Shown one piece after another: positions 16,515 through 43,953 of a DNA stretch of 64,000 nt. A model generated the notes under the pieces. That model saw only the letters and a program-made list of their open reading frames with translations, was not told where the DNA came from and made no database searches. Position 1 is the first letter of the stretch; each line of letters starts with the position of its first letter. The stretch lies in assembly GCA_013239625.1 (NCBI GenBank), contig MU057348.1, positions 10,083,825 through 10,147,824 on the forward strand, written 5' to 3'. The stretch comes from Lama guanicoe. Taxonomy: Eukaryota. A program made the translations under genes and the position numbers.

Positions 16515-16829
16515 GTCTGGTGTGGGGCCACTATTGGCCCAGATGGGCGCTTCCTATGCATAAAAAGCCCATTTTGAATTGTTTGAAGTCTCAACTGGAA
16601 CAAACAGCCCCCCAGTGGTGACAATCAAAAACGTCTCCATTTATTGGCAAATGTCAATTGATGTAAATTTCATCACTTAAAGGTCCTGCCTGCCCCTCCT
16701 TCTCGTCTCTCCCCCTCCTCCATGTGCCTTCTGTCTACACACTCACTGTCTCTTTTCCTCAAGTGCCCCCTATAGAGTTCCCTCGGTCTGTTTCATATGC
16801 CTGGAATTGACCCCAATTGAAAACCACTG
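16515..16829 (-). mobile_element. MER20 (hAT-Charlie) interrupted by a 155 bp locally templated insertion
   Basis: ccccagtggtgacaatcaaaaacgtctcca..attggcaaatgtc [insert] gaccccaattgaaaaccactg equals the reverse MER20 5' end split in two. Confidence 0.8.
16654..16808 (+). repeat. Direct duplicate of 15141-15295
   Basis: Hand alignment gives 13 mismatches in 155 bp (~92%), no indels, offset 1513 bp. Confidence 0.97.
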
Positions 16830-16834
16830 GCCTA

Positions 16835-17322
16835 AAAGGGCTTATTTAGATGACTTCACACCTTCATCGCTTGTCTGCTTCTTCTCTCCTCTCTGATTCT
16901 GCCCCTCACTTGTGCAGATCCAGCCATCGAGCCTCCTTGCTGTTCTCTGAATACACCAGACACCCTCTCACCTCACTCGGCACCTATCATGTTCTTCCCC
17001 CAGGTATCTGTGTGGCCCACTCCCTGACTTCCTTCAAGGATCGTCCCAAAGGCCACCTTCTCAGTGAGGCTTTCCCTGACCTTCTTATTTAAAATTTGAA
17101 TCCTCCAGACTCCCTGTGTCTCTCCCTTTCTTTGTTTTTCTCTCGAGCACTTATTACCCACCAATCTAGTTTAAAACAAGCTTATTTATTTGATATCTGT
17201 CTCCCTTATGAAGATATAAGCTTCAAAGGGGCAAGACTTTTTTCTTTTTCCCATTCCTGGAACAGTGCCTGGCACAGACTAGATGCTCAATTAAAACTTG
17301 AGGAATAAATGAATGAATAAAA
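16835..17322 (+). mobile_element. L2a-type 3' end
   Basis: gcctccttgctgttctctgaatacacc...caccttctcagtgaggctttccctgacc...aacagtgcctggcacag...aataaatgaatgaat. Confidence 0.88.
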
Positions 17323-20059
17323 TCTATAGCCCAGTTCAGTGTCTGACATGCATATAGCATCCTAGTCACTGTGCTGCTTCTGTCTTCCTGTTCTTGTAAC
17401 CTCCATCCCCTAAGATTATGGTCTGCCCCTCAACTCCAGAGGGCACCGTGACTTTGGTTGACCAGCACTCTTGATCTGGACAGCCTCATTCCTTCCCACT
17501 ATTTCTGGTTGTGCTTAGCCCACCTGCCCGGATGTCCACCTGCTCATTCTTTACCTCCACCTTCTTAGGATAGATTAATTGTCTGGATCGCCACCTTCCT
17601 GCCCCTAGATTCTCCCGATGCTGTGACCCCTGCTACCTTGCCTTCCCCGCACTGGGCCTACACACTGTCCTCAACCTTCTTCTCCCACCAGCGATGCCCC
17701 CACCCACCACCTTTCCAGAAGTGGAGCTGGTCTGCTCTCCAGTTCTAACATGACCTTCCGAAGTCCCCAACTCCACAACTTCCTTCTGTCCAAATCTTGG
17801 AAAAGTCGAGCGATTACATCTCCCTTTTCCCTGTTCATTTACCATGAGACCTGAAATTGTGGCAGGCCTATCTTTCCATGAAAGGCTTGCCTGAGTTTTC
17901 TTGCTTCCACTTGACTGTAACGTGAGCCAGCTCTTGGAGCCATAGAAACCCAACACCGTTCAACAAGCAAACAACTGTAAATGCCAAGAGTCAAGATGCC
18001 TCAAGTGAAGGAGAACTTGAAGTCAAGGTTGGTCCTCATTTCTGTTGCATTAACGTGACATTAGACAGTTTCTTTGGCAGACACCACCATAATGTCAGCA
18101 GGGACTTATCTGGATACAGTAGTTAGTTGCCTGTGATAAGAAAGAATCAAGTAACCAAATGCATAATATTTCTGCCTCAGGTTTGCTTGTTTGCCTGTAG
18201 AGGAGAGGCATTTGGGAGCAAAATCCATATACATCCAAATCACATACCTATTAGAACTGGCAAAGCAACACTCATAAAACTTTTTAAACCTAGAAATAGA
18301 TCTGTGGACACAAGACCAAAGTGCTCACATAAACAAAACAATTGATTGAACCAGAATGCATTTGCCTGTGAGAAAACTGAAGGTCATTTATCAAATTATC
18401 CAAGGAATCCATGATTTGAGCTGACTCTGATGACCTAATCAGATATTGGAGGTTATAAGCATTTCATGAATAGCTCAAGGAATTCAAGGACACTAGTTGA
18501 AAAGATGATTATGATTTGGTTTCTGGACATCTGGCCATGCTATCCAGCCAACCCACCCTCCTCCCTCCTCTCTCTTCCCATTCTGACTTCTAACAGTTTT
18601 CCTACAAGCTACCAAAGGAAGGAGCTGACAGAGATAAGCGCTCCATGCCCTTGAACTTTTCAATGCCTGACTGCTATGCGGGGGTGTGGCGGGGGTATTT
18701 ATCACGCTCACAATGGCCGGTACACTGCAAGGGCAGGACAAGAATCTGGTTTCCTGGCTGGTTCTATGTTTTCTACAATGGTCAGAAAATGATAAATACA
18801 CTTGTTACTGTATCAGCTGTGCAGAGGAGGAAATGTGACGTGAGAAAGGGCAGAGACTGCTCAATCTGCACCATCACACAAGTTACATATGCATTATAAG
18901 CATTGGAGCTATTTCTCTGCAGTCAGACGTTGAAATCTTGAATGCCAAAGTTGCCAACATCTAGATAGAGTTTAACAGTCTTCCTAAATAAACCTTATTA
19001 ACTGTGCTCCCTTTATGCTTTGAGCCTTAACAAATAAAAATTGCTGTTCTGTTTTGATTTTAAAAAAGGAAGCCATATATATTTTTTAAAGTCTCATGTT
19101 TGGAATTTCCCAGATCTCTGGTAAAATGCCCAAATAGCTCAATCTTGGGAGACTTCCCAGTTGTCTCAGAAAGGACTCGACAGTGCTTCAATGAACGGTG
19201 GCATAATGCAAAACGTGTCGATCCTGTGTTGAGTCACTGAAGAGTGACATTTATTGAACACTCCTTGTATACCAGGCATCATGCTAACACAGTATACAAA
19301 CAAAAATACAAGAAGGGGAGCTTAATTATACCAGGGGGGCAAGTAGAGGATGTTTTCTTTAGGTAAAAGGAATCGGGTAACGAGAAACAACAAACAACTC
19401 TACTTATAAACTTCCTTACTTTAGCACTGTCCCAGGATAGTAAATAAGTGAAAATACAAGCTATAAATAGAAAGATACAGCAAAATCCAAAACCTGCTTT
19501 TGTCAAGAGACTTGACGTGGAGCATCTTGGTTGAAACTCACAAGTGAGTCAGTGAAAGTCATAGTAAAGACTGAACTGCTTTTCTCTGTGATATTTTGAG
19601 AACTCTGCAGCAAATGGCTCTGATTTCAGTCTTTAGTAACAGACTTAAAAGGACAAGAGGTTGCCAGCATTTTTCTCTATACACTTTATGCATCTATAGG
19701 AAATCTGGCTTCCATGCAAACTAAACAATTGTGAATTTAAAGCAAGATTCATAGGTATGTAGGTTCAACATATCTAGTGGAAAAATATTATTAACAGGCA
19801 ACCTTGAGGTAGAAAACACAGGTTCCTAGGATGGCAATTAGACCTAACTGCAGCCTGTAACACTGGGTTCCTCTTTGATATTCTCCTAAGAAGGAATAGG
19901 CACGGTTTGCTTAATTCAAACACTTTGGAATAAAATTGCTTGCTTTATTCATCTTAGAAAAAAATCCCCTTTGGGAGAAAGGAAAATCCAGTTCCCTTCC
20001 CCATCAGATTACTGACCCAGAGTAGAAGTGTCATCGGATCTACAGGAGACAGATTGAAT

Positions 20060-20818
20060 TTCCCCTGCCCGGTCCTCACTGCCCTCTTCCTGCTGGGAAT
20101 AGCGGGAACCTTTTCCCTTTTGGAGAACCTTTGTGATTCAGTAGCTGTAACCCATTCCTGTCTCCAGAGATGAGCACATGGCCCAGTGCTGGCCAAATAA
20201 GGTATCTCTGGCCACAATGATTGGGTCAAAGATTGGCCTTGACCAAGCCAGACCAATGAGACCCAGTTTGCGGCTACTAAATTGGTGGCCACCATCTTGC
20301 TTCTAATGAGAGAGCCTGTCTGAGAGGGAAGCTATCGTGGAAGAAAGAAGAGCAGAGAGATAGAAAAAAACCAGATACATGAAGTCATATTTTTAGCCTC
20401 CAAGTGAAGCCCTGATCCCAGACGACTAACATTCTTTACTCTGTCTGCCTCCTTATTCCTTACCTCCAGTCATTCCCTGCCCAGCTTCCAGGACTTCCAC
20501 CTGATCACACCTCACAAAACTTCTTCGGTGCAAATCACCTGTCTAGACCTCCACTTCACCTGTCTCTAGACTCTCCAGGTAGCTTCTTTCTCGTGGGCCT
20601 TCCTCCCATGAGAACCTGCACACCACCCACATCTGCAACACTCCCCACTCGCATCATCTTCCCAAAGGCAGATCTGGTCTTTATCTCTAACATGTCCAAT
20701 CTGCTCAAACTTCATTCTTTCAAAATCATGGACATTTTAGTTTTGTAACTAATAAATTTGTTTTGCTTAAGGTGGTTTGAATTAAGCTTCTGTCACTTGC
20801 AACTGAAAGCCTTTGATT
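20060..20818 (+). mobile_element. MLT1 (J/K-type) MaLR LTR, interrupted at ~20410-20730 by unclassified sequence
   Basis: tctggccacaatgattgggtcaa...ggtggccaccatcttg...taataaatttgttttgcttaag...ctgtcacttgcaactgaaag. Confidence 0.7.
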
Positions 20819-21134
20819 TTCATTTATAACAGAACTTAATTTTCTTAGAGCAGCTTGATTTTTTTGGAAGAGCCAAGGGTCATCTAGAGGCAGGCTTTTT
20901 GAATATTACATATTCAAACACTTTTCGAACATTCAAACATAGCTACCATTTTGTGCATTAAATATTTTGCAGTAAAATACAATGAACTATAATGAATATA
21001 AGCTAAAATGTGATGAAACTAATTATACAAGCATCTAGTAATTCAGAAGAGGAGTCTCCATGGTGCCTCTTTGAATTGAAATGGTATTTATTTATCATAT
21101 AACTGGTAATTAAATGGGTGGCTTTAGAGCAACA

Positions 21135-21320
21135 CACTCAAGGGTGGTGGACAGACCACCCACACTGGTAATATCTTGGGGGGTTGGTTTAAAATTCAGA
21201 TTCCTTGCACCCATTCTAGGCCCACTGAATCAGAATCTCTGGGGACTGGTTCTGACAATGTTCATTTCGGATAGAATTCCAGGTAATTTTCTAGGCATAC
21301 AAGAGATTGAGCATCATTTA
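21135..21320. mobile_element. MER5-type hAT MITE
   Basis: cagattccttgcacccattctaggcccactgaatcagaatctctgggg...ccaggtaattttct. Confidence 0.75.
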
Positions 21321-21477
21321 AGTCCTGTTTCATATACATACTTTTAGTAAACCTTCAAGTGTTACTGTCTGAACCTAAAGAATAATTCTAAGAAGATCTC
21401 ATCATTTGTAAGATTGAATGAGCACACCTGTAAAAGGAGTAAGGCTCAGGTAGTTTATAAATGCTTAGAGGTAGGAT

Positions 21478-21851
21478 GTAATCAGCTCAGGGTAAGTTAG
21501 CTGTAGTAACAAATGACCTGAAATATTAATGGCTTAAGACTTCAAAGGTTTATTCCTTATGCATTTACATATCCATCACAGGACATGCCAGAACTCAGGG
21601 CTACTGGAACAATCTTTCTCTGGGACATAACTGGTCTGGTAGCAGAAGGTGAAAAGAATAGGAGGACTGCAGGCTGGTCTCAAAGTGTCCACTCAGAAGT
21701 GACCCATGTTATTTGCAACCATATTAAACTAACCAAAGCAGGTCACATAACCACTCCTGTGTTCAGTGGAGTTGGGAAGGATAATCCTAGAGAAAAAGGA
21801 TACTAAAGGGAGGAGAAGCAAACATTTTGAACAGAAATATAACCTACCACA
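21478..21851 (-). mobile_element. MLT1-type MaLR LTR
   Basis: Starts tgtaatcagctcagggtaagttagctgtagtaacaaatgacc and ends ataacctaccaca. Confidence 0.8.
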
Positions 21852-22589
21852 TAAGACAACTGATGAAGTAGACCATGTGTTCTCGAAAAAAAAAAGAGGG
21901 AATCTTTGGTCAGATCAGTTTGTGGACTGCTGCATCCTCTAGCAACCTCGGGAGCTACACAATGTAAACCAGCGTATTAAAAGCCTCAGAAGTCCTGCAA
22001 TGGAAAAAAATTAAGATGATTTACCCCATGTCTCCATGCTTTGTTTCCATGGAACCCTTTTCAAACACCATCTCATCACACCTCAGCAATGTGAGGAGGG
22101 TTGGACAAAGATGTCATTTGTGTTGTAGACAGAGTAACATTTTCTCCTTTCTCTACTACAAAGCAAGCATGTGGGATATTCCTGGCAGAATATTGCACAA
22201 TAAATTTTGTGCAGCTTCAAGCTATTCACGTTTAAAAAAAATTCTGGTATTCTACTAAGTCATCAGAAAAAAACCTGGGGAATTCTATGCAAATATCGTT
22301 CATGTTATTCTAAGGAGTTTCAGGCTGTTGAAATTTAATACTGTTACTGGAGAGCACTTAAGAAGTGAATCTAATAAGCTGGTTCTTCCAGGTATGAGGG
22401 TGTTCCAGAAAAGATTTTCCTTTGTCAGTAAAATCATCTTAATGAACCATCAGTTAGTCACACCTTTGGTAGCCTTCTGGGAAGACACTAAATCAAATTG
22501 CTGAGGTATTCAGTTTTACCTCGTAAGTATTGCAAATTCATCCCCTGTCGTCTCCTCCAGCACCTACTTCAGGATCTCATCACTCCTTA

Positions 22590-22910
22590 CCTGTGCTCTT
22601 GTTTCCCTCTGCCCAGAATGCCCTCCTCCAATCAAGAATGTCTTGACTGATGAAAAGTGCCTTTTCATCAGGCATCACCTTCCTCTGAACTCTTTCCAAT
22701 GTCCTCTCTTCACCATCCTCCAACTGGGATCAATCCTTTCCCTGTCTATCTTTTTATCATCATGTTTTATCACATCGCATTGTAATTATTTATGTGTCTG
22801 TTTCCTCTTAATGGAATAAGAGTCTTTTGACAACAGGTATTGTACTGTCTAATTCTTCTCTTAGAGCAGAGTGCATAATAAGGTGCTCAACTAATGTTTG
22901 TTATGTGAAG
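22590..22910 (+). mobile_element. L2 fragment
   Basis: gtttccctctgcccagaatgccct...gcattgtaattatttatgtgtctg...aggtgctcaactaatgtttg. Confidence 0.7.
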
Positions 22911-24135
22911 CTGCTGTTGAACTGAAGGCAAAAATTATGACAACACAAATTGTGTCAAGTGATACAGTACAGATGAAAACATTTTTTCAATCTGGTGTTT
23001 TAATATATGATAATATTTTCATAATTCATGAAGAATGTAGTGTTTTATGTTTTGAGTTAATGTGATTTTTAATTTTTATATATAAGCTTTATGCAAAACT
23101 TTTCAAAAATGAACCAATTCTCATGAGCATTTATTAGCATACTAAGAAAAAAAGTCTTTAAACATACTCTTCCTAGGCTATTGTATGGCTAAAGAAAATT
23201 TAGAAGACGTATGTCTCTTTATTATCCTAGCCACCGAAAACAAAAATGAATTTTTTACTGAGACAGAAAAACTAAGGAAAGAGAATTTAAGTGATATGTG
23301 CCTTAGAAAAACAGTACAACATGCACGTTGGACCAGATCTTCTAATAGAAAAGAAGCCAAGTGCAAATTATATTCATCTAATTAGTTCAAGAATAAAATT
23401 TTCAGTTTTGGTAACTCTAACACATGTTATGTAAGAGATCAAGAGTATAAGAGGGAGAGAGAGAGGGCGAAGGAGGTTGTAATTAAAGTAAATCTTCCCA
23501 GAACCTTGGATTGCACCAGGAACGTGGCCAGAATAAGCAAGGCTACTGACTTCTGCCAGGGTCACGTTTAGAGGTTACTTTATCATAGCTCTTGCTTGAA
23601 AAACATAATTTGAGCAAAGAAGGGATCCCAATGTTCAGTGACCTCCATGTGCTTCCCATTAGGGTCGGAAGAAGAAATGCTGTGGTGTCTTCTGCAAATG
23701 GAATGGAATGGGAATTTCAGATTGCTTTCTGCTTGGCAAGAGATGCCAGCCTGGATATCAGGAAGGCTTAGCTATTTCTAGAGAACAGGGACACAGAGTC
23801 ATACACACTCAGCTAGGAACCACTGTGAATGCTTACTTAGTGGCTTGTCTTCTCGGTAGGAAAGCATCTAGCTCAGTTCAGAATGGCTATCTACCTTAAT
23901 CTAAATGATGTCATGATTTTCAAGGTGAAAATTAAGAGCAAAATATTATTAGTGAGCTCCCTTGCTGGCTGAGCTCAGATTTGGAAGTCCCCTGAAATGG
24001 CCTGTCATATTTTCACTTCTTCACTACTGCCTACCAAGAAAGCATGACTGAACACATAGGTCAGTCAACCCCCTTCCCCACCTCCTATCAGCAACTAGGA
24101 GCAATGATGAAGACCGAGCCAAGTGCAGCATCACT

Positions 24136-24554
24136 GTTAGTTGCTTATCCAATACCCACTTCCCTCTTTGTCCTCACTAAACACTTGTCCAGCTAAATAT
24201 TCTCTTTCCCAGCCAATTAAACACAAGTAGAAGTTTGCCTGGGAATTCTGAGAAAGCCTTTGATTTCCTGTTAAAAGGAAACAGAGGTAACACTCTTTTC
24301 CTGCTTTCAGGGCACATGTGATGTTTGAACTACAGCAAACATCTTGGAACACCTTGGAACATGAGGCTTTAAGGAGGCAGAGCAGAAAGATAGAATGACC
24401 TGGGTCCATCATGGCATCATGAGCTACAAACAATGCCAGTAATCACCTAACTCTGGATTTCTATAACATGTGAAAAAGAGTCCCCTATTTGTTGACGCTA
24501 GTATTGTTTTGGTTTTCTGTTACTTGCAGCCATACACATTCCTAACTGATATAT
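24136..24554 (+). mobile_element. MLT1 (I/J-type) MaLR LTR
   Basis: tgttagttgcttatccaatacccac...ttttctgttacttgcagccatacacattcctaactgatata. Confidence 0.85.
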
Positions 24555-25514
24555 CAAGTCTATTAACAGAAGCTCCACTGGGGATGCTCAGAGAAAAGCC
24601 AGTCTCAGCAGGCTACCAGTAGTGAACGGATAATAGTTTAGGAGAGGTTGAAGCTAGTCAGATGTTTCTTCCCCTTTCCAAATGTCCCTTCATTTCCCCC
24701 CCTCACCTTCACATAAAATTTTAGACCAATCACAGAAGATGGAATTAAAGTTCCCATTTTAAAGCATCAGTCTTGATACATGACATGTCAACATTATCAC
24801 TTCCTTTCTCTGACTCATGAAGTTTCTTTCAATACTAAGATTTATTAGTGTCTATCCTGCTCATGTTGGATTTCAGCAAAGTCTGTAACTTAAGAATCCT
24901 GGTCAGTTGAAAATAAAAGAAGTCTCACACTTGTTTATATTTCTCAATAAAAGAAGATTCAGCTTTATCATATCAAATTTTATATAATCTGGCCTCCATT
25001 ATGAAAATCCTATCTTTAAATTCCAGCTGGAGGTACAGTATTCACCCTTTATTACTCAAGTATAAGACCCAGGTATAAGACTTCCATGTGGATTTCATAA
25101 TTACCTTTGGCAAATTGTGTTTTTATGTGATACTCACTGCAGTCACTTTCCAAGTGCTAACATGTAGGTTTCTATAGGCATAGATCATATTTCTGTTTTA
25201 AAAAAAAACTCTCCAAACTGGTAACATCTGGTTGATGGACTGGGTTATGGATGTTTGCACCTGGAGCATAGCCAGACCCAAGGCCCATGCAAACATACAA
25301 TTACACCATATCCATCACATCAAAGACATTTTCTGTCCTGGCTCCAATTTTGGTTTGGCACATTGTTTCATCTCGTTCTGCTCTAAAACTCTCCAACAGA
25401 AGAATGGGTACCAAAGGGCAGCTTGCTTATCTTCCTTTAACTTTCCTATTTGGAGAAGTGCCCACCAAAGTATTTAGAAATGAAGCAAATCCATCACTTA
25501 AACATTTCTATTAA

Positions 25515-26310
25515 TGATAATAGCCACCATTGGCCGGGGTATTTACCAGGTGCCGAGAGTTGTGCGAAACCCTATACATACATCTTCTCCTTCAGCCCTC
25601 ACATGTCTGTGAGGAGATCTCTGTCTCTTGATACTAAGTCCTTCACGCATCCAGTGTATGTCCTGAGCAGACACTGGGCTGGTCACCAGGACTGCAGAGT
25701 CTCTCCACGCATGCAGGTGTCTCATGGAGTCTGCTGGGAGGAAGAGATGTCATAGTGCAGTGAGAGTAAAGAAAGAGGGAAACTAAGAAGCATATAACAG
25801 GAGCGCTAACCTAGAGGGGGTCAGAATGTAAAATCTCACTGGGAAAATGATGTTTAAGCCCAGACACCAGGGTTATTCAGTTAATGGGGGAGGGGGTACT
25901 CGTGCTGGGGGTGAATATCATCCCAGGCAGATGAGACAAGATGTTGCCAGATAGCACAGGGGCAAGAAAGTGCCAGCTAGTACTTCTGAGGGACTGAAAA
26001 AAGGGCACTATTGCTGGAGCTAAGAGAACTGGGGATAGAAGGGTGAGGGGGACCGCAGCTTGTGTGCCATATTTGGGACTTTATCCTAAAGACAAGGTGA
26101 AGCCATGCGGAGGAGCCATTCAGAGTGGTAACCGCAGTTGCTACTGTTTTGTGTGTGGGTTTGGGGTGGGGAGGCAGGGGTGTAGACAGGGAGAAGAATG
26201 ATCAGGTTTGAATGCAGATTCAGAGCAATTAGCACCTGTGCCCAAAGTCACTCCAAAGCTGGAATTTGAACCCAGCGTGCTTGATCTCCATCCTTTGCTC
26301 TTAACCAGTC
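25515..26310 (-). mobile_element. MIR (25515-25615 and 26215-26310) split by an L2 fragment (~25640-26210)
   Basis: MIR halves taatagccaccatt...ccaggtgcc and gcccaaagtcac...gctggaatttgaacccag flank L2-like sequence. Confidence 0.55.
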
Positions 26311-27756
26311 ATTCTCTGCCATCTTCTCGCTTTACCAGCTTCATTCCAGTCAGGGCACCTGATCTCTATCACATCGTCCAAAAGACCGTTCAAAAACACG
26401 TGTCTAGTGCTTACTATGTACACAAGGTGTAGGGATTCAAAGGCCCTGCCTTCATTCCTTCTCCGTGGTGACGTGGTTTTGGAATCTGTATTCTGACCCA
26501 TCTATTTATTCATGTTCCAAAGCCCACTTTGTTTTAGACCAATAGCAACATCCTGTCAAAGGGAAAGTTAACTGCAACTGGGGGCAGTGAAGGAAACCAT
26601 TCTCCTGCAAGCAAAATCCCCACCATCCGATTTAATTCTGACAACAGCCTTGGGCAGTGGTGCACAACTGCAGATGAGTAGACTGGGGTTCGGAAGGTTA
26701 AGCCATTGGCCCAAGGTCATACAGGTAGAAAGTTCCAGAACTGGGAGACCAACGTCTGTCCTCTGGGAACCAAATTCTCAGGGCCGCTCAGCCAAGCAGT
26801 TTCCCTCTGATCAGGAGGTTGCTCCAGGCAAGAGGGAAAGGGAGACAGAGGGAAGAGGAAGAGTTTGAGAGACATGATTTTAACACAAAGAATGTTGTAT
26901 ACGGCATGATTCTGGGCTGTCCAATCATTTCTCATGGCTTTAGATATTTTTAACCAAACTTATTGTTATAAATCCACACAAAAGTCATTACTAGATAGAA
27001 AGGAAAAGAATTTTCAATTCCAACTAAATCCCAAAACCCATCTTTTCTTTCCAATTCTTTTTTCTTTAGGTTAAAAGTTGTACTAGTTAGGGTTGTTAGG
27101 AGGACAAACGATTTTGCTCAAAGAAGTAAGGAATAAAGTATTTACAAAATCCAGAGGCAATATTTGCTGAGGTCTTTGAGTGCCTTTTAAAAAAGGCTTT
27201 AGATCCCTGTGGATTAATTAAGCACCTCCCAGATCTTGTCCTTTCAATGCTCAGAAAAAGAATGGCTCCTAATAGGATAAAAGGTGTATTAAGACCTAAG
27301 CGTGGGAGTTTGCCTGAACATTTTTCTTCAGAACTAGGTTTGCTCTAGCAAGGTTTACCATGAGCTCTGAGCCTCTCACTTCATTTTCCAGATAATCTAC
27401 CCAGCCATCTATAAACTATTTATCTATAGGTTAGCAATGTTTTTGTATATTCTGCCCATCAGAATTAAATGGATGTGATTATGCATATATTTCATAGTAT
27501 TTATTGTATATTTACATCGAGGAGATGTGTGATACTGTTCTCGTTTCCCACAATTATGTTCTTTGGGATCCTGCCTTCTTTAGGTGTCATGCTGACCCCT
27601 CCCTGCTTTTCTTTTTCACACGTTAACTATTGATCTTGCTCGATCATGTTTAAACAAGAAATAGTAATGTGTGGTGTTACACTTCAAAGACCTGTGAATA
27701 CTAACGTGAATGCTCTTTAATTGCAAAAAAAAAAAAAGAAGAAGAGTGGATCAAAG

Positions 27757-27811
27757 TGATTTTGCTCATTAAAAATAATTTGATTTTGCTCATTAAAAAT
27801 AATTTGATTTT
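27757..27811. repeat. Perfect 24 bp tandem duplication (2.3 copies)
   Basis: tgattttgctcattaaaaataatt x2 followed by tgatttt. Confidence 0.95.
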
Positions 27812-28055: not shown

Positions 28056-28056
28056 T

Positions 28057-28089: not shown

Positions 28090-28090
<1 letters not shown>

Positions 28091-33298: not shown

Positions 33299-33675
33299 AG
33301 CACACAGAACCTGTCTTCACCTGGCTAAGAACCTCTCTCCTCTTCCAAGCTAACAAAGTGTAAAATCCCACTTACCATTCATCCGCATAATTGAACTAGC
33401 TCCTACCACCCTGTTATTCAGATGACTAACACCCATGACCTCTTTCTCACCTTGTTAGATAACTTGGAGCTTTAAACTGACAACATGAAAAGGGATCTCA
33501 CCTGGCCAGCACTAATCTTGTCTCTTGTCCTGGTTCCAAATGTTTATATGATCATTAGCCCCATCCTCCTCTCCTGTTTGGCAGTGACCTGCAGGCAACC
33601 ATTCAGCTTTATGTTACCCAGGGCTTCAACAACTAAAATCAGCCCCTTTCTTTCCTTGCCATAAAGAGATACCTG

Positions 33676-33677
33676 GC

Positions 33678-33716
<39 letters not shown>

Positions 33717-33730
33717 ACACACACACACAA
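33676..33730 (+). repeat. Orphan poly(A)35 plus (CA)n, flanked by a 13 bp TSD-like direct repeat
   Basis: aaagagatacctg (33663-33675) and aaagagaaacctg (33731-33743). Confidence 0.7.
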
Positions 33731-34289
33731 AAAGAGAAACCTGAAAATATTATTTTGGGGAGCCAGGATGTCCCCATCATCAGCTAGAGGAAGCCCAGTT
33801 TTTGATAAACACGATTTGGCCTTGCAGGGATCAAAGAGAGCTATTTATTGAAGGAAGGGATGGAAGTATTTGATGGGGTCCTTCTGCAGACTCCCCGTAA
33901 ACAGGATAGGCCCTATCAATGAGAGCTTATACACAGCCAGGCCACAGTCCCCAGGAACAATGGAGCCGCGAGAACAGCTGGGGGCAAGGGAAGAGCCTCG
34001 GACCTGACAAGATTGTTCTGCCAAGAGAATGGCCGTAAACAGGATTAGTCGTAATGAGATTATCAACTCAAGACCTGGAGGTCTGAGCTGGAGAGTCCAG
34101 AGCTGCGTAAAGGAAAGACACAGAAGTAGCTTGTAGGGCAAGGAGATTACAGAGCAAGGGGCAAGGGCTTTCCCTTCCAGGTTCTCTCTGGCCCAGGGAT
34201 GCCGTCTCTCCCGGGCTGAAAAATTTGTCACTCTAATTGCAAATATTGCTTTGTAGGAGCTGAAGAACCAGCAGCGAAAGCACTAAATA

Positions 34290-34840
34290 AATAGTTCTCA
34301 ATTAGGGGGCACTGCCAATGTCTGGAAATATTTTTGGTTGTCACAACCGGGGCTGGGGGCAGGGAGAGCTGCTGCTAGCATCTAAAGGCAGAGGCCAGGG
34401 AAAATGCTCAATGTTATATAAAGCACAGAACAGCCTCCTCCTTCCAAAAAAGCATTATCCAGCCCCAAATGCTTGGGCACCCCTGCACTGGAGGGAATCT
34501 AGATAGGATTCTGATAAATGACAACTGGATACTGAGCTTGGGAAGGTGGGGGAGGCAGGAGGGAGGGCAGAGGGAGGTGAGTTGGGGAGAATGGGCAAAC
34601 ATCTCTTGACCTGGAGTCTAGAGAGAGGTGATCACTTTCCAGGAGGTAAAAATTGGTTCTTGGGGAACAAAGACACATAATCATTTATGTATAAAGCACA
34701 GATAGGTCTATAGAATCTGAACAGATAAACAGCATTTTTGTGATATTAAAGTTTCATGGGAGGCAGAGTGATTGGGGAAAAAAGGTCTTAAAAGGCTCCT
34801 TAGGGAGATGATAATGAAAAACAGGTCGAGAGACACTGGT
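34290..34840 (+). mobile_element. MER20-related hAT-Charlie element (MER20B/Charlie4-like)
   Basis: 5' part tagttctcaa...aatgtctggaaatatttttggttgtcacaac...gcagaggccaggga is MER20-like; 3' end aaggctccttagggagatgataatgaaaaacaggtcgagagacactg is followed by gtctagat (Charlie-type target). Confidence 0.7.
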
Positions 34841-36299
34841 CTAGATTAGAATCTAGATTGACATGCTTTCTAGAGCTACGTCCAGGATTTACATGGTGGA
34901 ATCTTTCAAAGAGACAAATTGATGGCTGTGGCTCTAGGACTTAAGATTGGTTTCTTACTGCCTTCGGAATAAAATATAAATACCAGGTGGAAGGCACACT
35001 TTCAGCCCGGCTCCTACCACACCCCACTCATCACTCTTGGTCTCAGCCACAGTGAATCATTCATATGCTGCTCCCACCTCGCTGGACCCTTTCCTCTCCT
35101 TCCCCCAGCATCCATTGGGTGGCTAACTGTAGCTCCTTCATGAAGGACGAAGGACTGACAGCAGCTCTAACTCCCTCTACCCCGGGCTGCTTATCCCTTC
35201 TGTGTGCTCCCTTAGAGAACAGTCATTTACCCTGATTGCAGCATTGTGTCCACTTTACTGTAATAATTCACTGCATCTTATAGGCAGGCATCAATCCCCA
35301 CCCAATACAATGCCTGGCTCATAGTGGACCCTCAGTACCTATTTGTTAAAACACGAGAGAATTTGCGTGCACTCTCTCAGTTCATCCTCTCAGTCCCGGT
35401 GAGATAGTTATAATCATCCCCGGTCTACAGAGAGGAGCACGGATTTCCTGGATGAGAAATAGCTGTGCCCTTCTGTGTTCCTTTCTGGGTCCTAAACCTC
35501 ACCCAGATTTTGGCCAAGAAATAGAGAGTAAACAGTCTTCCTGAAAAGCTAGGCTTCCAGAGAAACAGCATCGCTTGGAAACCAGTCACAGGAAAAACAG
35601 AGGCAAGGGCAGAAAGTGAGTCAGGGATACAGGTTGTATAAACACAAGGCCTTTCCAGTCTCCTCTGTAGAGAATACACCAGGAGCCACACTGAGGTCTC
35701 CATCTAACACAGTTTGAAAATCATTGCCTTTAAGTCCTAGAGCTAAGATAAGCATTTTTGGTCAAGAGGCCCCCGTATTTGCCTGTAAGTGTTCTGGCAC
35801 TAGGACTAACAGAATCACCCATCCAAGAACAGAACCCATGGGGCAGAGTAGTGACGGGGGAGATGGAAGACCTCGGTGGGCAGAGGTGCGGACCTGGAGA
35901 TTGGAGAGCAGGTCTGGGGCTAAGGCGTGGTTCCGGTCATCTTAGTACACAAAGAGGCTATGTCACAGGTGGTCCTTGAAGCTGTGGGAGCAAGTGCAAG
36001 CACAGAGGGGTGGAGAAACAAAGAAAGCAGAGAGAACAGGGCTGAGTGGGGAAGATGACAAACAGTTCCACCATGTCCTGTATTTTCAGTTAACTTTTTA
36101 TGTGCAACTTACCTTCTCAATTAGATCACGGACTCCTTGTTGTTAGAAGAAGCTTTAGATGCTTAAAAAATGGGGGGAGGGGTCATCTTAGTGCCTTGGG
36201 TAGAGTAGAGGCTTAAGAATTAAATGAATGGATGAATTAAAACTGTTTCCTCTATCATTAAACTTCTGGAAAGTGCTTGCTTTTTGCCTCCACTTCCTT

Positions 36300-38125
36300 T
36301 TCTTTCCACGATTTGGATTCTCCACCCTGTCATGACTGACACGTCTCTTTAGCAAGCTGTCTGTGACTTCTGCATCACCAAATCCACTGGCTTCTCCTTG
36401 AGTCACCTTCTGCAAGCTGCAGCATCCAGCACCTTCATTTACTGTTGCCTCCCATGGTTTCCATACCACCTTTTCTCTTGGCTCTTTGTCAGTCTTCTTG
36501 AATATTACTTCATAGCCTCCGTTGCTGGCTTGGTTCCTCTCTTAGTCCCCTGAAAGCAGAGGCTTACTCAAATTTCTTTTTGTCCCTCTCCTCTCCTTTT
36601 TCAAACTCTCCCTTGACAATGGACATTCATGGTCTCAGTGATGGCTCCGATAAAGAGGACTTCCAAATCTAAGACTCAAGCCCTGTTGTCTTTCCAGATC
36701 ACTTTGGACCTGGTCCTCTGGAACTGAGGGCAGGCTCCCTTTCACAAAGCAGGGAGCAGCCCTGGGTGGATGCTGAGAACCAACATGCGTCTGGTGAAAT
36801 AGACAAGGACAGAGGCAGAGTAGGGGACACAGCAGGAAGGTTGACTTTAGAGGGGCCAGTCAATCAGGATGCAAACTTGAAGGACTGGAGTAAAGATGGG
36901 AAGAGAGAGAGATGCAAAATACAGGCAGATTTGGTGTCAGTTCAAGGTTTCTCTCACAGACCCTGAGTTCTGACCATGGCACAGCTCTTCCATGGGTTAG
37001 TGCACCCTTTAGAGGATCGGGAATAACACATAGGTACTGATTTCCAGACCAGGTTTCCAGGAGGCCTTGCCACATCGCTGAGCCAGGACCTCCTTCCTCC
37101 TTCATGTTCACTTGGCATTTGTTCTCCAGAGTTCTGCACTTGGCTCTCCTCTTTTCATTTCCTATTTTGCTTTGCTGGGTGATCTCATCCACTCCCACAG
37201 CTTGGGATACTATTTTTAGGTTGATACCTCCCAAACATATATCTCCAGCCCAAAAATCCAGACCGGTAATACTACCTATATCTGCCAAAAAAAAAACCTT
37301 AAAATCAACATGTCCAAACAGAAGCCATTGTCATCTGCTCTCTCTGACTCTGTTTCTCTGCCTGTGCCCTCTCTCCTGGTAATGATACAACCAGCCACCC
37401 AGTCATTCAAACCAGAAACTGTAGAGTCCTCTTCGACTCCTCTTCTTTCCTTTATCCCTAAGTCAACTCTGCCTCTTAATCATTTGTTCACTTTTCACAC
37501 TTGTCCTTCTCCACCGCCGATTTCTTGGCTATCCCCCATCATCTCTCAGCTGGCTATTCCAGCAGTCTCTTGACCAGTCACTTGTGTCTAGTTTTACAAC
37601 CTCCCAATCGCCATGCCACTTGGTACTTTTCAAAGCAGGAAGTTGATGATCTTACTCCACGGTCCAATGACTCCTCACTGGTCGCCGCCAGATAAAATTT
37701 AAACACAATGCCTGGCACACAGTCTCTTTCCTGATTTGCCCTCTTCCTTCTAGGTTTATTTACAGGCATTTTCCAAGTAGTACCTCATGCTTCATCTACA
37801 TCTAGGGGCAATCTCCCAAATAGCCCTGCTGACTCCAATGCCAGACCTCTGTGCGTGCGTGTCTGCTGGCTGGCATGCCCTTTTCCTTCCGCGTGGTGAA
37901 TGCCAACTCATCCTTGAACACTTGGTTCTTGTATCAGCTTCTCTTTGAAGCCTTCTCTGACCTTTCCTTGTTTCTCTAAACTCTTGTGCCACCACTTCCC
38001 TGTACACAACTGTAAACCAGCACTTAATGGACTGAATTGTAATTTCTTGTTGACGCTTTTAACTTTCCCACTAAAATCAGAGCTCCTGGGTCGGGGGGTA
38101 CCCTGTCTCACGATTTCTTTCTTCT
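36300..38125 (+). mobile_element. Fragmented L2 (~36300-36700 and ~37090-38125)
   Basis: catcaccaaatccactggc...atatctccagccca...aaaatcaacatgtccaaac...tttgaagccttctctgacc...cagagctcctggg. Confidence 0.75.
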
Positions 38126-38619
38126 CTGAAGCTAGCCCAGGGCTTCTAAAGCTGTCTTCTTCAGAATTCTAGTCCCATGAGTTATTAAAAGGTATTCCTC
38201 ACACAGGCATCTATGGTTAAATACGTTTGGGGAAAGCAGCATGTTGACAATACACATGAGCTCAGGGAAGTCTCTCAGCAGAATCTGTTTGATCTGGTTT
38301 AACTCAGTCCCTCCAAACATCAGGGCAGGGGAAGACCCTTAAGCAGATCCTTATAACATGTGTGCAAGGGATAAAGGTAAAGATGTGCCCTGGGTGACCT
38401 GGAGAACAGAGAAGGGGCCGGCCCAGGCTTGAGCGGCTCTGGAAGCACATCTGGAGGAAGCGACCTCCATCTCTCACAAAAGGATAGTCACCAATTTAAC
38501 CCCTGAGAAGGAGATGCTGTGGTACCCTAATACTTCCAGAGACCGAACCTCAGATTGGAGGTGACCATCAGAAGTGTCTTTTTCTTTTTTTAAAGTGGAT
38601 GTACAGTTTTCTTCATTCA

Positions 38620-38929
38620 TTTTTTACTGAAGCCTAGCCAGTTTATAATGCGGTGTCAACATCTGGTGTACAGCATAATGTTTCAGTCATACATATACAT
38701 ACACATATTCATTATATTCTTTTTCATTATAGGTTACTACAAGATATTGAATACAGTTCCCAGTGCTATACAGTAGAAACTTGTTTATCTATTTTATATA
38801 TAGTAGTTAGTATCTGCAAATCTGGAACTCCCAATTTATCCCTTCCCACCCGTCCCCCAACCCCCAGTAACCGTAAGTGTGAGTCTGTTTCTGTTTTGTA
38901 AATAAGTTCATTTGTGTCTTTTTTTTTTC
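38620..38929 (-). mobile_element. Camelid/cetartiodactyl L1 3'UTR (older subfamily)
   Basis: Same family as 14876-15140 in reverse: ctggtgtacagcataatg...caagatattgaatacagttccc...gttttgtaaataagttcatttgtgtc. Confidence 0.9.
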
Positions 38930-39770
38930 AAAATGAGATCTTACCTCACACCAGTCAGAATGGCCATCATTAACAAGTCCACAGACAATAAATGTTGGAG
39001 ACAGTATGGAGAAAAGAGAACACTCCCACACTGTTGGTGGGAATTGGTGGTGGGGTTTGTTGTAGCCCTTATGGAAAACAGTATGGAGATTCCTCAAAAA
39101 ACTAAAAATAGACTTACCATATGATCCAGCAATCCTGCTGCTGGGCATATATCTGGAGAAAATTATAATTTAAAAAGATACATGCAGGCCAATGTTCACG
39201 GCAGCACTATTTACAACAGCCAAGACATGGAAACAACCTAAATGTCCACTGACAGGTGANNNNNNNNNNNNNNNNNNNNNNNNNNNNNNNNNNNNNNNNN
39301 NNNNNNNNNNNNNNNNNNNNNNNNNNNNNNNNNNNNNNNNNNNNNNNNNNNNNNNNNNNNNNNNNNNNNNNNNNNNNNNNNNNNNNNNNNNNNNNNNNNN
39401 NNNNNNNNNNNNNNNCTCATATGTAGAATCTAAAAAACAAAAACAAACAAACAAACTAAAACAAAGCACAAATGCAGGACAGAAATAGACTCATGGACAG
39501 AGAAGACAGACTTGTGGTTACCAGGGGGGTGGAGGGCGGGAAGGGATAGACTGGGATTTCCAAATTGTAGAATAGATAAACAAGATTACACTGTATAGCA
39601 CAGGGAAATATACACAAAATGTTATGATACCTCACAGAGAAAAAAATGTGACAATGAGTGTGTATATGTCCATGAATGACTGAAAAATTGTGCTGAACAC
39701 TGGAATTTGACACAACACTGTAAAATGATTATGAATCAATAAAAAAAGTAAAAAAAAAAAAAAAAAAAGA
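38930..39770 (+). mobile_element. L1 ORF2 C-terminus, 3'UTR and poly(A) of a different, probably younger subfamily
   Basis: Translates [22 protein letters not shown] and MFTAALFTTAKTWKQPKCP (L1 ORF2 end); aataaa and a long A tail at 39738-39770. Confidence 0.95.
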
Positions 39771-40359
39771 AAAGCAAGTCTTCCAGGACGTCCTTCTCTC
39801 ACGTCATCACTGTTGTCAGACTTAGCTTGGAAATGGCCTTCCCTGGGCTGAATCCCACCCCTAAATTCAACTCACTTCACACTTTTCAGCTGTTATCCTA
39901 CTGCTGTTTTTATGTTCCTGTGTATGTCCTAGTGGCCTTTAATCACGATACTTCAGGCTTTCTGAGGGTAGGTGCTGGTCATTTACGCAGTTCTCCCGTA
40001 GACACTGGAAGTCCCAAACATACAGTGGGCTCCTGGTACGTGTTTATTGAATGCAGTAAACACGAGCATAATTTAATATCTGAGACGTAAAAGTTGCAAA
40101 TGTGATGACACAGCACCTGAGCTTGGGAACTTGGAGACCTTGGGGGGCATTTTCGGCAACTGCTAAGGCCGGGGGAATAGACCCTTTTTATACTGTTTTG
40201 CCTAGAAGAAAATGAATTCACTAGTTCCTATTTAACTCCCAGGCCCATGCAGGGGAGGAGGGGCAGAATAGCATCTCTGACTTGGATATCCAGCACAGTC
40301 TCCCAAAAAGAACAAGCATTTTAAAAGACATGGGCTGTATTTCCAGCTTTGCACAGAGG

Positions 40360-40610
40360 CAGCACCACATAGGGGTTTAGGACCAGGGCTGTGGTCAGTG
40401 CATGGACTGCCGTCCTGGCTTTGCCACTTGCTGTTCTATGACTCTGGGCAAATTACTTGACCTCTCTGGGTATTTTCTCATCTGTAATATGTGGATGACA
40501 ATTCTAGGACCTACCTTCTAGGATTTTTATGAGGACTGAATGAGTTACAATTTATGGTGAATTTAGAAGAGTGCCTAGCTTGTAACAAATGCAATTTAAG
40601 TGTTTGTAAG
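40360..40610 (+). mobile_element. MIR SINE
   Basis: tcctggctttgccacttgct...ctgggcaaattacttgacctctctg...ctcatctgtaa. Confidence 0.85.
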
Positions 40611-42438
40611 ATCAATCAATCAATATCAGTTTCCATGTTGAGGCAGATCCAGGATGAGACAGTGAAGTCTCATTTTGCCAGATAGTGCAAATTATCTGTA
40701 CTTCCAGCACCCACTGTTTTAAAATAGTAATAAAAACTAGTGCTTCTACTCTCTATTCTACAAACAACCTATGAAGTGGGTACTATTTTCATGTTTTAGA
40801 GAGAAAACAGGCTCAGAGGGTACGGTGCTGAATGCTGTAATGCTGAATGTCCGTGTTAGGTGATGGAGCCAGGCTTCACACTCCTGTCTGTCCCACTCCC
40901 AAGCTCAAACCTTTCTCATCAAGTGATAACTTTCTCTCATGGGGGATGTTTGGGTTAGAGGCAACCCATTACTTCCCATGACTTACTAGTCAGGAAGTAA
41001 TTTAGAAACTTCTTTAATTACACAACACAGGTCATATCCCATCTGGATGTTTCGAACTAATTAGTAGTTTTAATAGAAAAGTTCAACTTGCACATGACAC
41101 TTTTTTCCCACACACACTACAATGCAAGGCAAGCTTCTTTCCTCGTTCACCCTCAACATCCCCACCAGTTCCATTCTCCAAAGTCTTAAATATCACTTCA
41201 AAAAAAAGTATTCATTTGTAAGCATCTTCTTTATAATATAAAGAAATGAGACCATACTTCATAGACAGATGTCTTCCTATTTGTAGACCCTTATTCTAGA
41301 GTGAGTGAAACAGAGGATCAGTGAGCTACAGTCGACTCATAACTCATCTTGATCATTGAATGTGAGAACAGGGGCCCCCAGAGAGGAACCTACCTATCCC
41401 TCTCCATTTGATAGATCAGGAAAGCAATGCCTAGAGAGAGTAAGGAACTTTCTGTAGATCCCACAGCAAGCCAGTGGCAGAATCAGGAATGTCAGAAGAC
41501 AGGCAGAGTCAGGTGCATGGGGTTAGGGGCAGTAGTACAGATAACAAGTGTTGCCAACTTGAAACTGACTCGAAGGTGATCATGATGAAAGCAACAAAGT
41601 TTTTCAACCTGCCACTCAGGACATGGGATTGCACATCAGTTCTGCCTCTGTCTCTCAAGAGGATGCTGCTATCAGGAATAACCTATGCATGTATAAACAT
41701 TTTTTAAAAACATACACATGAGATCATACTTTCATGGTGATCCAGGCTTCATTGCTTACATCCCCAATGTACAGATGAGGAAAAGGAGGCACAGGGCATG
41801 ACTCAGCAGCTTACCACAAGAATCTCCTGGACACCTGCCTGGGCTTCTGTCAGATGCATTTGGGTGAATTTCTATTCGGCATTCTTACTGAGGTCTTATT
41901 GTTAAGAACACGTTCTTTGGGTTTCCTGCTTATCTCTAAGCTGGAGAAAATGTGCATGTTCTTTTTGTTCTTTTTTTCTGTTTGCTTTTTCAACCTTCAG
42001 CTTCCATGACGTTAAAAAAAAAAAAAAAGTAAGCTGAGCCAGTCTAGTCTAAAAGCAGCCTGTTTGCAATGTGATATGGGACCTGGACTGCAAACAGCTA
42101 AACCCCGGTGTAGGGTTCTCTAAACACATTTCAACAATTTTTTCCAAGTGCCAATTGGTTTATTTCCACTGAAATACTTCAAGATGATAAAATAACAGTA
42201 CATTTCCTACTCTACTGAATGAGTGATGGTAAAATGGTACTTACATATATCAGAAGGGAAAATAGAAAGCTAATGGATTTTTTTTTTTTACATTGAAGCG
42301 TAGGCATCCTTTAACATTCCTTGTATTTAGCCAAAGGCATTTTAAAGGTTAGAACTGGTTAAGGCAAAAGTCTTATAGTCCATAGTTTTTGTTAAGGTTG
42401 ATATTTGGTAGACCAGATAACTTCTAACCCTGTAACAT

Positions 42439-42721
42439 CACCTTCTGCTTTAAAATTATTGATTCTCCATAAAAATAAAGTCATCTGCTCCCTAAACCTG
42501 GAAAAGCTGGTGAATATGTGAACCAATTCTAGAAAGTGTCTCTGAGTTGTTTTTTGTTTGTTTCAGAGTTTACTGTGTATATGCAAAAAAATATATATAT
42601 TGTATGATCCATTGTTTTGCCAAAAGCCCTTAATTCCCTTTGTCAGTGTAGGCATAATGAGTGATCTTTCTATATGAGAATATCACAGAAAAGCACAGAT
42701 AAAATGATGGTCTCTTCCAAG
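42439..42721 (+). repeat. Unique-sequence donor of the duplicate at ~43513-43777
   Basis: Hand alignment gives about 25 substitutions and a few 1-2 bp indels over ~250 bp (~87-90%); offset ~1056 bp. Confidence 0.95.
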
Positions 42722-43489
42722 CCTAAATGCTAGAATTATGTGATTTAAATTGTGGCATCAGATCTAATCTCATCGGCTTTGGAAATTGCTCCCTCTCATC
42801 CTCTCTAACCTCCTTCTCCTCTTTCATCTGTGGAGGGAGAGTGAGGTAGGTAAATACGACTAATATTATGCGAGTGGAAGGAAATGCAGTATAACTTTTA
42901 AGGTCCTACTTTAATACCTATGACTAATGAAACATTAATTATAGTGCTACATAAATCTTGAGGAGATTTCAAAGCTAAGTCTGCTCTTCTTTTCATTCCA
43001 TTGACTTATCATCCAGGAGTCCCACCCTATCCAGGATAGCTCCTTCTTATTGGCTATCCTCAACAGTCCAATCCAAATATAACTCTTTAGTCCTTCAAAA
43101 GTGGCATTCACGTCCCCTCCCAGTCCTTCTCCATGCTCTCCATGTTTCATTCCATGAACCCCGAAGTTCAACCAACATCTTCCCTCTTCCTGAAGAATCT
43201 GCAAGTTTTCCCACCTCCTGGTTGCCTAACGTTCATTGCTCCCTTAATCCAGGGCCTTAGTATGACCAGCTGAAGTCTCTCCCACCACCCTCTTCTGACC
43301 CACAGTCACACCAGTATGACCACCTTTAAGGTTCTTCTTGCTGCATTGACCAAAATCCCCATCTCCGTCAATGTCTTCACTAACACAGCCATACTTGCCT
43401 TCCTTTGCCAACACTTAATTACAAAAGTCATGCCCTCCCAATCATCACCAAGTTCTTCACCAGAGCTTTCGGCTGCCTTATCTCTAAAA

Positions 43490-43953
43490 TATGTCAACCA
43501 GGGGTGATTTTGCACCCCCTTACTTTAAAAATAAATTCATTTCCTCCCTAAACCCGGAAAAGCTGGTGGATATGTGAACCAACTTTGGGAAGTGTTTCTG
43601 AGTTGTTTTTTGTTTGTTTCAAAGAGTTTACTGTACATATACAAAAATATATATATTATATGATCCATCGTTTTGCCAAAGGCCATAATTCCCTTTGTCA
43701 GGTAAACATAATGAGTGATCTTTCTTTATGAGGATATCATAAAAAAAGCACAGATAAAATGATGGTCTTTTCCCAAGACATTTGACAATGTGTGGAGCTA
43801 TTTTTCTGGTTGTCACAACTTGGGGATGGGAGTGCTATTGGCACTTAGTGGGTAAAGGGATGCTTCTAAACATCCCACAACGCCCAGGACAGCCCCTCAC
43901 AGCAAAGAAGTGTCTAGTCTCAGATGTCAATGAGCCGAGGTCGACAATCCCTG
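43490..43953 (+). mobile_element. MER20 interrupted by a ~260 bp locally templated insertion (~43520-43776)
   Basis: tcaaccaggggtgattttgcacccc [insert] gacatttgacaatgtgtggag...tggttgtcacaact...caggacagcccc...gccgaggtcgacaatccctg gives a complete MER20 once the insert is removed. Confidence 0.9.

Follow-up and report, generated by a model that had tools for sequence, protein, structure and literature searches.

Two MER20 elements of Lama guanicoe are interrupted by copies of nearby DNA within one short segment, a possible site of recurrent breakage

We found that in a stretch of 64,000 nucleotides from Lama guanicoe (GenBank assembly GCA_013239625.1, contig MU057348.1, positions 10,083,825 to 10,147,824 of the forward strand; the whole stretch is called the window here, and coordinates count from its first letter) two copies of the transposable element MER20, which lie 27 kb apart on opposite strands, are each split by a direct copy of sequence from 1.0-1.5 kb upstream. 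Both inserted copies sit within the same 24 nt of the element, and a third MER20 in the window, which carries no insert, has a deletion in that segment. The reading towards which we lean is that these are two repair-mediated duplications (RDs), also describable as single-copy Pack-TIRs (TIR, terminal inverted repeat), that arose in dead MER20 elements, and that they share a site because the segment at nt 16-39 of the element is intrinsically unstable. More tentatively, the motif G5-(C/T)GATTTTG-C6-A-G4 in this segment could be fragile across the family, breaking repeatedly in the germline for as long as its strings stay intact, with a zone of leukaemia breakpoints in the human gene E2A/TCF3 as one somatic instance.

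The window was compared with itself by BLAST, and a second, more permissive run was limited to pairs at most 10 kb apart. At both settings we observe exactly two local duplicate pairs outside interspersed-repeat families, and the permissive run, in which further short local duplications would have given a base rate, returned none down to 30 bp within 10 kb; apart from these, the self-BLAST yielded only pairs of L1 3' ends and a single old inverted repeat. This bears out the original prediction, which had described two oppositely oriented MER20s split by direct upstream copies and had named these as the only dispersed local duplications in the 64 kb. The first pair joins 15141-15295 to 16654-16808 (155 bp, direct, spacing 1,513 bp), with 142 of the 155 positions identical (91.6%), a Kimura two-parameter (K2P) distance of 0.090 and a substitution divergence of 8.4% (95% confidence interval (CI) 4.5-13.9). 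The second joins 42470-42718 to 43526-43773 (252 columns, direct, spacing 1,056 bp) at 87.7% identity with gaps, or 90.2% for substitutions only (221 of 245 aligned bases), with a K2P distance of 0.106 and a substitution divergence of 9.8% (95% CI 6.4-14.2); once aligned by hand, it ends at 42721 and 43777. The second donor had been drawn from about 42439 onwards: the pair stands as 42470-42721 to 43526-43777, whereas the 16-nt leftward extension to ~42439-42441 is indistinguishable from chance. Both donors lie upstream (left) of their copies, and the copies are direct though the two MER20s oppose in orientation. The downstream member of each pair is the one that interrupts a MER20-like element, and the two inserts are unrelated to each other.

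Each donor has its left edge in very A+T-rich DNA; over 31-nt windows the content is 87% A+T for donor 1 (15141-15295, + strand) and 77% for donor 2 (42470-42721, + strand). Donor 1 is abutted on its left by an L1 3' end with an A/T-rich tail (14876-15135, + strand), which is 82-85% like three other L1 3' ends in the window; since the L1 copies are more diverged (~16% apart pairwise) than the first duplicate pair, this L1 predates the duplication. The same left edge gives a sub-threshold Rfam match to SNORD38 (15136-15168, - strand; 21.5 bits against a gathering score of 44, E=0.48), which is taken as chance in A+T-rich DNA. The stretch 15000-17100, which spans event 1, is present in 20 runs from 8 studies and 4 organisms, with 0.83-0.96 of the sampled words found; the four organisms are all near-identical, and event 1 therefore exists in independent data from closely related organisms.

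As reference for the elements we used the MER20 consensus as printed in the supplement 1 alignments of Pace et al. 2009 (PMC2671141). MER20 is a non-autonomous hAT-Charlie element of 219 bp with the termini CAGTGGTTCTC... and ...CCCTG, and its numbering here takes the C of CAGTGGTTCTC as nt 1; the count was made by eye from optical character recognition text and is possibly off by 1. The landmarks are a G5 string at nt 16-20, C/T-G at nt 21/22, a C6 string at nt 29-34, A at nt 35 and a G4 string at nt 36-39, after which ACATTTGG begins at nt 40. The 24-nt segment at nt 16-39 thus consists of a G-string, (C/T)GATTTTG and C6-A-G4, with the G-strings serving as direct repeats, and ancestral CpG positions fall at nt 15/16 and 21/22. 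The assignment of the copies in the window to MER20 is based on the mutual similarity of the three (BLAST, nhmmer) and on comparison with the consensus by eye.

The body of copy 1 (about 16493-16653, - strand) runs from consensus nt ~39 onward, reads GACATTTGCCAAT... on the minus strand, and matches the body of copy 2 by nhmmer (E=0.003) and copy 3 by BLAST; it aligns poorly past nt ~90, and its 3' end is not recognisable. Its 5' piece (16809-16829, - strand) is the terminal 21 nt, CAGTGGTTTTCAATTGGGGTC, which stops at nt 21 and matches the consensus at 17 of 21-22 positions. The 5' piece of copy 2 (43495-43519, + strand), CAACCAGGGGTGATTTTGCACCCCC, matches nt 11-34 and ends in the C-string at nt 34, and its body (43778-43953, + strand) extends from nt 40 (ACATTTGACAATG...) to the 3' terminus. 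By eye, copy 2 tracks the consensus from nt 11 to the 3' end, its first ~10 nt being diverged or missing, so that copy 1 keeps the 5' terminus CAGTGG... and copy 2 keeps the 3' terminus ...CCCTG. The third MER20 (34283-34480, + strand), recognised by BLAST and nhmmer to copy 2 (E=3.6e-9) and to copy 1, reads ...TTAGGGGGC fused directly to ACTGCCAATG, which joins nt 21 to nt 40 and removes 18-19 nt between the two G-strings. All three MER20s of the window are damaged in the same 24-nt segment. Copy 2 retains C5 and G4, copies 1 and 3 retain the C of the CpG position at nt 21, and the other CpGs of these elements have decayed to TG or CA. Folding with DNA parameters gives the 5' segment of copy 2 a short hairpin, GGGGTG...CACCCC, of -3.9 kcal/mol; its 6-bp stem (43500-43519) has stayed perfect with letters other than those of the consensus stem, a conservation that may be due to chance. 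Two further candidates were rejected: the only other C4+N G4+ motif of the window (62596-62605) does not belong to a fourth MER20, and the split elements are not members of a longer MER20B-like family, the inserts being unrelated to each other and each 88-92% like local DNA.

Read in the orientation of MER20, event 1 consists of ...GGGGTC (ending at nt 21), the insert (16654-16808, + strand, a direct copy of donor 1) and GACATTTG (from nt 39), with the loss of MER20 nt 22-38 (17 nt). The first two bases of this insert, TC on the plus strand and GA in the orientation of MER20, are common to MER20 and the donor and form a 2-nt microhomology. Event 2 consists of ...GCACCCCC (ending at nt 34), the six bases TTACTT (43520-43525, + strand), which may be filler or else the beginning of the copied tract in diverged form, the alignment being ambiguous there, the insert (43526-43777, + strand, a direct copy of donor 2) and (G)ACATTTG (from nt 39/40), with the loss of nt 35-38/39 (4-5 nt). 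The last base or bases of its insert, G or possibly CCAAG, are common with MER20, which gives a microhomology of 1-5 nt, with a possible CACC in addition. Both inserts adjoin (G)ACATTTG, the junction being ambiguous by 1-2 nt because of microhomology, and both have cost the element adjacent bases, as had been predicted. That the two fell at the same nucleotide holds for one side of the inserts, where the junctions coincide within one base (nt 39/40), whereas the other sides differ (nt 21 and nt 34); what the two events have in common is a break interval. Taking the retained, invading end as the position of the break would place it between nt 38 and 39 in event 1 and between nt 34 and 35 in event 2, both inside C6-A-G4. 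The nt 21 junction of event 1 and the edge of the deletion in copy 3 both fall exactly after C21 of the CpG.

Neither a target-site duplication nor a polyA/T tract is present at the ends of either insert. A plain segmental duplication, in which homology to the donor flanks would continue into the MER20 pieces, was discarded, as homology to the donor does not run past the junctions and MER20 is a much better fit for the flanking pieces than the donor flanks are. An L1 3' transduction, suggested for event 1 by the L1 tail that abuts donor 1, does not fit an insert that has no L1, polyA or target-site duplication. A small-RNA or retro-pseudogene origin was likewise rejected, since Rfam returned only the sub-threshold SNORD38 match for event 1 and nothing for event 2 (scan to 43801).

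The two pairs are statistically alike in divergence (8.4% versus 9.8%, Fisher p=0.72), which amounts to 4-5% per copy. Across mammals, MER20 copies have a median divergence of ~18-21% from their consensus (Tan et al. 2021, Supplementary Data 1, PMC8277862), and because the two captures are so much less diverged, they took place long after MER20 was mobile, in line with what had been predicted. At usual mammalian neutral rates they would be tens of millions of years old.

These features support the assignment of both loci to repair-mediated captures of proximal DNA, a class described before and the one to which the original prediction had referred them: direct donors 1.0-1.5 kb away, no target-site duplication or polyA, microhomology, possible filler and a small deletion. 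As such they are ordinary repair scars, and their interest lies in the shared break interval. As defined by Pace et al. 2009, an RD interrupts an old repeat with 50 bp or more of inserted DNA whose donor lies on the same chromosome less than 5 kb away; polyA is absent, the junctions carry 2-9 nt of microhomology, filler and 1-15-nt deletions, and synthesis-dependent strand annealing was given as the mechanism (PMC2671141). The two loci agree with this description in their non-repeat inserts of 155 and ~252 bp with MER20 pieces on both sides, in their donors 1,513 and 1,056 bp upstream, and in junctions with microhomology, possible filler and deletions and without polyA/T, the 17-nt deletion of event 1 being just over the stated range. 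They differ in that no within-family site preference was reported for the RDs of Pace et al., whereas the present two, separated by 27 kb, were broken within one 5-nt interval. MER20 hosts 11 of the 1,136 human RDs, and 137 RDs lie in DNA transposons (PMC2671141).

The single-copy Pack-TIRs of Tan et al. 2021 arise by transposition-independent gap filling in TIR elements, with a cis bias of less than 5 kb, a median microhomology of 2 bp and a median gap of 4.6% of the element (PMC8277862). The two loci resemble them as immobile TIR elements with captured nearby DNA, cis bias, small gaps and microhomology. Tan et al. propose 'internal fragile sites', possibly caused by secondary structure (PMC8277862), so that the earlier statement that a shared breakpoint is not predicted by the repair model was overstated; they mapped no specific fragile site in any family. 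Among their 370 Pack-TIR rows, 37 are MER20 (PMC8277862), which we grouped manually into ~15 unique loci; MER20 is thereby among their most frequent hosts. Their length range (100-5,000 bp of internal sequence) fits both inserts; the two element pieces are in addition expected to cover 10 bp or more of the consensus termini each, and in each of our copies one MER20 terminus is unrecognised, diverged or missing. With their cut-off of at least 90% identity to a unique parental copy, event 1 passes at 91.6%, and event 2 stands at 87.7% with gaps or 90.2% for substitutions only. Their requirement that the parental copy lie more than 100 bp from repeats, which belongs to their pipeline and is no biological criterion, excludes donor 1, which abuts the L1 3' end at ~15135. 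Both events would therefore probably have been passed over by these filters, event 1 through the repeat within 100 bp of its donor and event 2 through an identity under or at the edge of 90%, and their absence from the four alpaca entries of Tan et al. is consequently uninformative.

Pack-MULEs and the abortive gap repair or filler DNA that follows the excision of hAT, P and Mutator elements likewise leave a transposon split by nearby or foreign DNA after repair synthesis has switched template. However, abortive gap repair needs an active, excising element and usually removes much of its interior, whereas here the element was long dead and only 4-17 nt were lost. Polymerase-theta end joining and fork stalling and template switching/microhomology-mediated break-induced replication (FoSTeS/MMBIR) are similar in that nearby sequence is copied from a microhomology primer, with multiple switches possible. 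Inserts mediated by polymerase theta are usually a few to tens of nucleotides long, with a template no more than tens of bases from the break. The tracts reported here, in contrast, measure 155-252 nt and come from 1.0-1.5 kb away.

Next, we considered how far the shared site exceeds expectation. Of the readable window, 0.94% is MER20. With two events taken as given, the probability that both fall in MER20 is p=9e-5, and with the shared position (within 3 nt, in another copy) it is 2-3e-6, while a 20-fold family-wide excess of MER20 among hosts would still leave p at ~9e-4. Chance is thus a poor explanation for the shared site, though the finding was selected as striking. MER20 accounts for roughly 3-4.5% of DNA-transposon sequence or copies, and with this share as the denominator its excess among published hosts is 2-3-fold (p=0.003-0.05).

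A parallel is offered by the 23-bp fragile zone in intron 16 of human E2A/TCF3, for which Wiemels 2002 and Tsai 2008 are reportedly the sources. In the cluster of t(1;19) and t(17;19) leukaemias this zone holds 46 of 60 breakpoints, and it contains two CpGs, flanking direct repeats and a C5AG4 motif at its edge (PMC8327686). The C5AG4 motif is the main peak of single-strandedness in live cells, the zone is prone to single-strandedness in native bisulfite, P1 nuclease and melting assays, with isolated DNA that is P1-sensitive and melts 2 degrees C below a scrambled control, and disruption of the C-string and of both G4 strings (the direct repeats) lowers targeting to the zone; breakage needs deamination of methyl-CpG by AID and then cutting by RAG or Artemis (PMC8327686). 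The paper in question, Liu et al. 2021, never mentions transposons (PMC8327686). Elsewhere the break cluster is located inside a MER20 (Rodic 2013, PMC4015642), or 'at the 5' end of' a MER20, an association called possibly coincidental (PMC10499895). In the literature searched, we found no paper linking the C5AG4 of E2A with the MER20 consensus or reporting a family-wide MER20 fragile site.

MER20 consensus nt 12-39 holds G5, the two ancestral CpG positions, C6-A-G4 and the second G-string, so that C-strings of at least 4-5, flanking direct repeats and CpG sites, the elements of the E2A zone, are all present in it. Judging from the descriptions in three papers and from the consensus, the human 23-bp zone is probably this MER20 segment, nt ~12-39. 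The junctions in the window (nt 21, 34 and 39-40) would then be at the corresponding consensus positions, nt 21/22 being an ancestral CpG. If the equivalence holds, these junctions and the deletion of copy 3 would lie in the homologue of a characterised unstable duplex, which makes intrinsic instability the most economical explanation. The two systems differ in cell type and outcome: breaks in E2A are somatic, specific to the B lineage and dependent on AID and methyl-CpG, and end joining with non-templated additions turns them into translocations, whereas the events in the window are germline ones, probably tens of millions of years old, and their outcome was a templated insertion.

The duplications, their polarity, their junctions and approximate age, and the lack of transposition or retroposition marks are seen in the sequence; from the junctions we infer the following cause of breakage, direction of synthesis and order of steps. 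Long after transposition had ended, a break, or a collapsed or stalled fork, would have formed inside C6-A-G4 of each MER20, leaving a free top-strand 3' end at nt 38/39 in event 1 and at nt 34 in event 2. This end may have entered a breathing A+T-rich duplex of its own or the sister molecule, 1.5 or 1.06 kb upstream, where 2-4 nt of microhomology primed the copying of 155 or ~252 nt. It would then have dissociated and re-annealed to the other broken end via 1-4 nt of microhomology, and trimming would have cost the element 17 nt in event 1 and 4-5 nt in event 2. The instability of the segment could come from its long C and G strings, from the slippage-prone direct repeats that flank it and from a short GC hairpin. 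We give the C/G strings and direct-repeat slippage more weight than a cruciform because the predicted hairpin is weak (-3.9 kcal/mol). The third MER20 may have lost the same segment by slippage between its two G-strings.

Several points count against this interpretation. The predicted hairpin, as said, is weak, which is not decisive; the sample consists of two insertions and one deletion only; and read-level support covers event 1 only. The excess of MER20 among published hosts is modest at 2-3-fold and depends on rough genome shares. The equivalence of the E2A zone with the MER20 segment is drawn from published descriptions and the consensus, and the AID and methyl-CpG on which the E2A mechanism draws in pre-B cells are not obviously available in the germline. 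Additionally, the three hominid MER20 RDs with printed alignments break at nt ~76, 130 and 168 and none at nt 21-40 (PMC2671141); in those three copies the C-string has already eroded to CCC. With these published breaks elsewhere in the element, a dominant universal MER20 hotspot is not demonstrated. The sequence-directed hotspot of the original prediction accordingly remains plausible, and is better grounded through the E2A parallel than it was, whereas dominance of the site across the family does not follow.

Among the other explanations, the one that survives best, though we regard it as unlikely, is that a single complex episode of replication repair (break-induced or microhomology-mediated) proceeded from left to right through the region, lost its template twice at the G/C strings of MER20 and each time jumped back 1.0-1.5 kb, copied 155-252 nt again and came back, so that both inserts would belong to one event. 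The divergences of the two pairs are indistinguishable, both donors lie to the left with both copies direct despite the opposite orientations of the MER20s, and two independent events within 27 kb are very improbable at the published rate of ~2 per 10,000 TIR elements (PMC8277862). However, agreement in side and orientation has a chance prior of ~0.25-0.5, the CIs of the ages are wide (4.5-14%), the permissive self-BLAST returned no further template-switch scars between the two sites, and a 27-kb tract with just two switches would be atypical. Such an episode is in any case a variant of the two-capture explanation, as the motif would still be needed to account for the sites.

A somewhat lower probability attaches to chance, that is, to two ordinary and unrelated RDs that happen to lie in two MER20s near the same position. 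At an RD density of 1 per 1-3 Mb, ~0.1-1 windows with two RDs are expected among 585 windows of this genome, the present one was picked because it is striking, and the published MER20 captures lie at scattered positions. Against this stand the low probabilities given above for both events falling in MER20 (9e-5, or 2-3e-6 with position), which stay near 9e-4 even at a 20-fold excess, and the damage to the third MER20 in the same segment.

Transposases of the hAT superfamily bind 20-40 nt from the 5' terminus, and the shared site lies within that distance. Together with the similar age of the two events and the suggestion of Rodic et al. that a protein recognition sequence is one possibility for the TCF3 MER20 (PMC4015642), this is what speaks for a cut made by a protein, whether an active or domesticated hAT transposase or a PRDM9 or other zinc-finger allele that recognised a MER20 motif for a limited time. 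We consider such a cut improbable. hAT transposases cleave at the ends of the element and not 34-39 nt inside it, whereas here the terminal 21-34 nt are kept; the events are far younger than the mobility of MER20; meiotic breaks spread over ~100 bp or more around a PRDM9 motif and not over one 5-nt interval; we saw no transposase gene or other trace of such a protein; and the deletion of copy 3 is explicable by direct-repeat slippage alone. PRDM9 or a residual hAT-type nuclease had been put forward as possible causes, and nothing here favours either over intrinsic instability of the DNA.

Very improbable, finally, is a capture by abortive gap repair while MER20 was still mobile, followed by gene conversion, or an assembly artefact: hAT and P elements are known to acquire filler DNA by abortive gap repair (work cited by Tan et al., PMC8277862) and read support lies with the event 1 stretch only, but the gaps are small (2-8% of the element) instead of large and terminally biased, the divergence of 8-10% is far under the expectation for ~100 Myr, conversion over 155-250 bp at 1-1.5 kb would have to be invoked ad hoc and twice, copies diverged by 8-12% are not expected of an artefact, and the event 1 stretch is found in the 20 runs, 8 studies and 4 organisms mentioned above.

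The window also contains 12 runs of N, of irregular lengths between 16 and 375. One of them (39260-39415) lies between the two split MER20s, more than 3.8 kb from either event and part of neither, and the uncertainty that it introduces is limited to the exact 27-kb spacing. By BLAST, its flanks (39056-39259 and 39479-39745) are collinear with another L1 copy, matching 48168-47981 and 47674-47380 there without a change of order or orientation, and one L1 therefore apparently continues across it. This run and the one at 47784-47967 fall at matching places in two copies of one L1 region; the others are at 117-425, 3012-3154, 51036-51323, 51346-51361, 52911-53204, 58664-58860, 59330-59461, 59544-59717, 59726-60100 and 61117-61267. 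In appearance this pattern fits deliberate masking of a particular type of sequence better than it fits assembly gaps that arose independently. Three L1 3'-end copies (38621-38925, 47380-47705 and 56145-56319), alike at 82-85% and in the same orientation, are spaced by 8,759 and 8,765 bp. Because nothing else between them matches, the even spacing does not reflect a tandem duplication of the intervals, and it is probably a coincidence. An inverted pair of L1 3' ends (38607-38796 and 39568-39759, 72% alike) flanks the N run at 39260-39415 and may be an inverted dimer or a nested insertion. The old inverted repeat among the self-BLAST pairs (53243-53563 and 60478-60801, ~330 bp, 69% alike) presumably represents two copies of one interspersed family.

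Should the tentative family-wide reading of the motif prove right, a fragile MER20 motif would sit in thousands of copies in every placental genome, and germline breaks at it would yield templated captures of nearby DNA as well as slippage deletions. The fragility of the E2A zone, which exceeds that of its surroundings more than 400 times, would then be explained by an inherited transposon motif and not by a peculiarity of the locus. Tan et al. postulated 'internal fragile sites' for the formation of Pack-TIRs, and this would be the first such site to be mapped; each mammalian genome would hold thousands of natural replicates of it, with varied string lengths, CpG states, orientations and transcription states.

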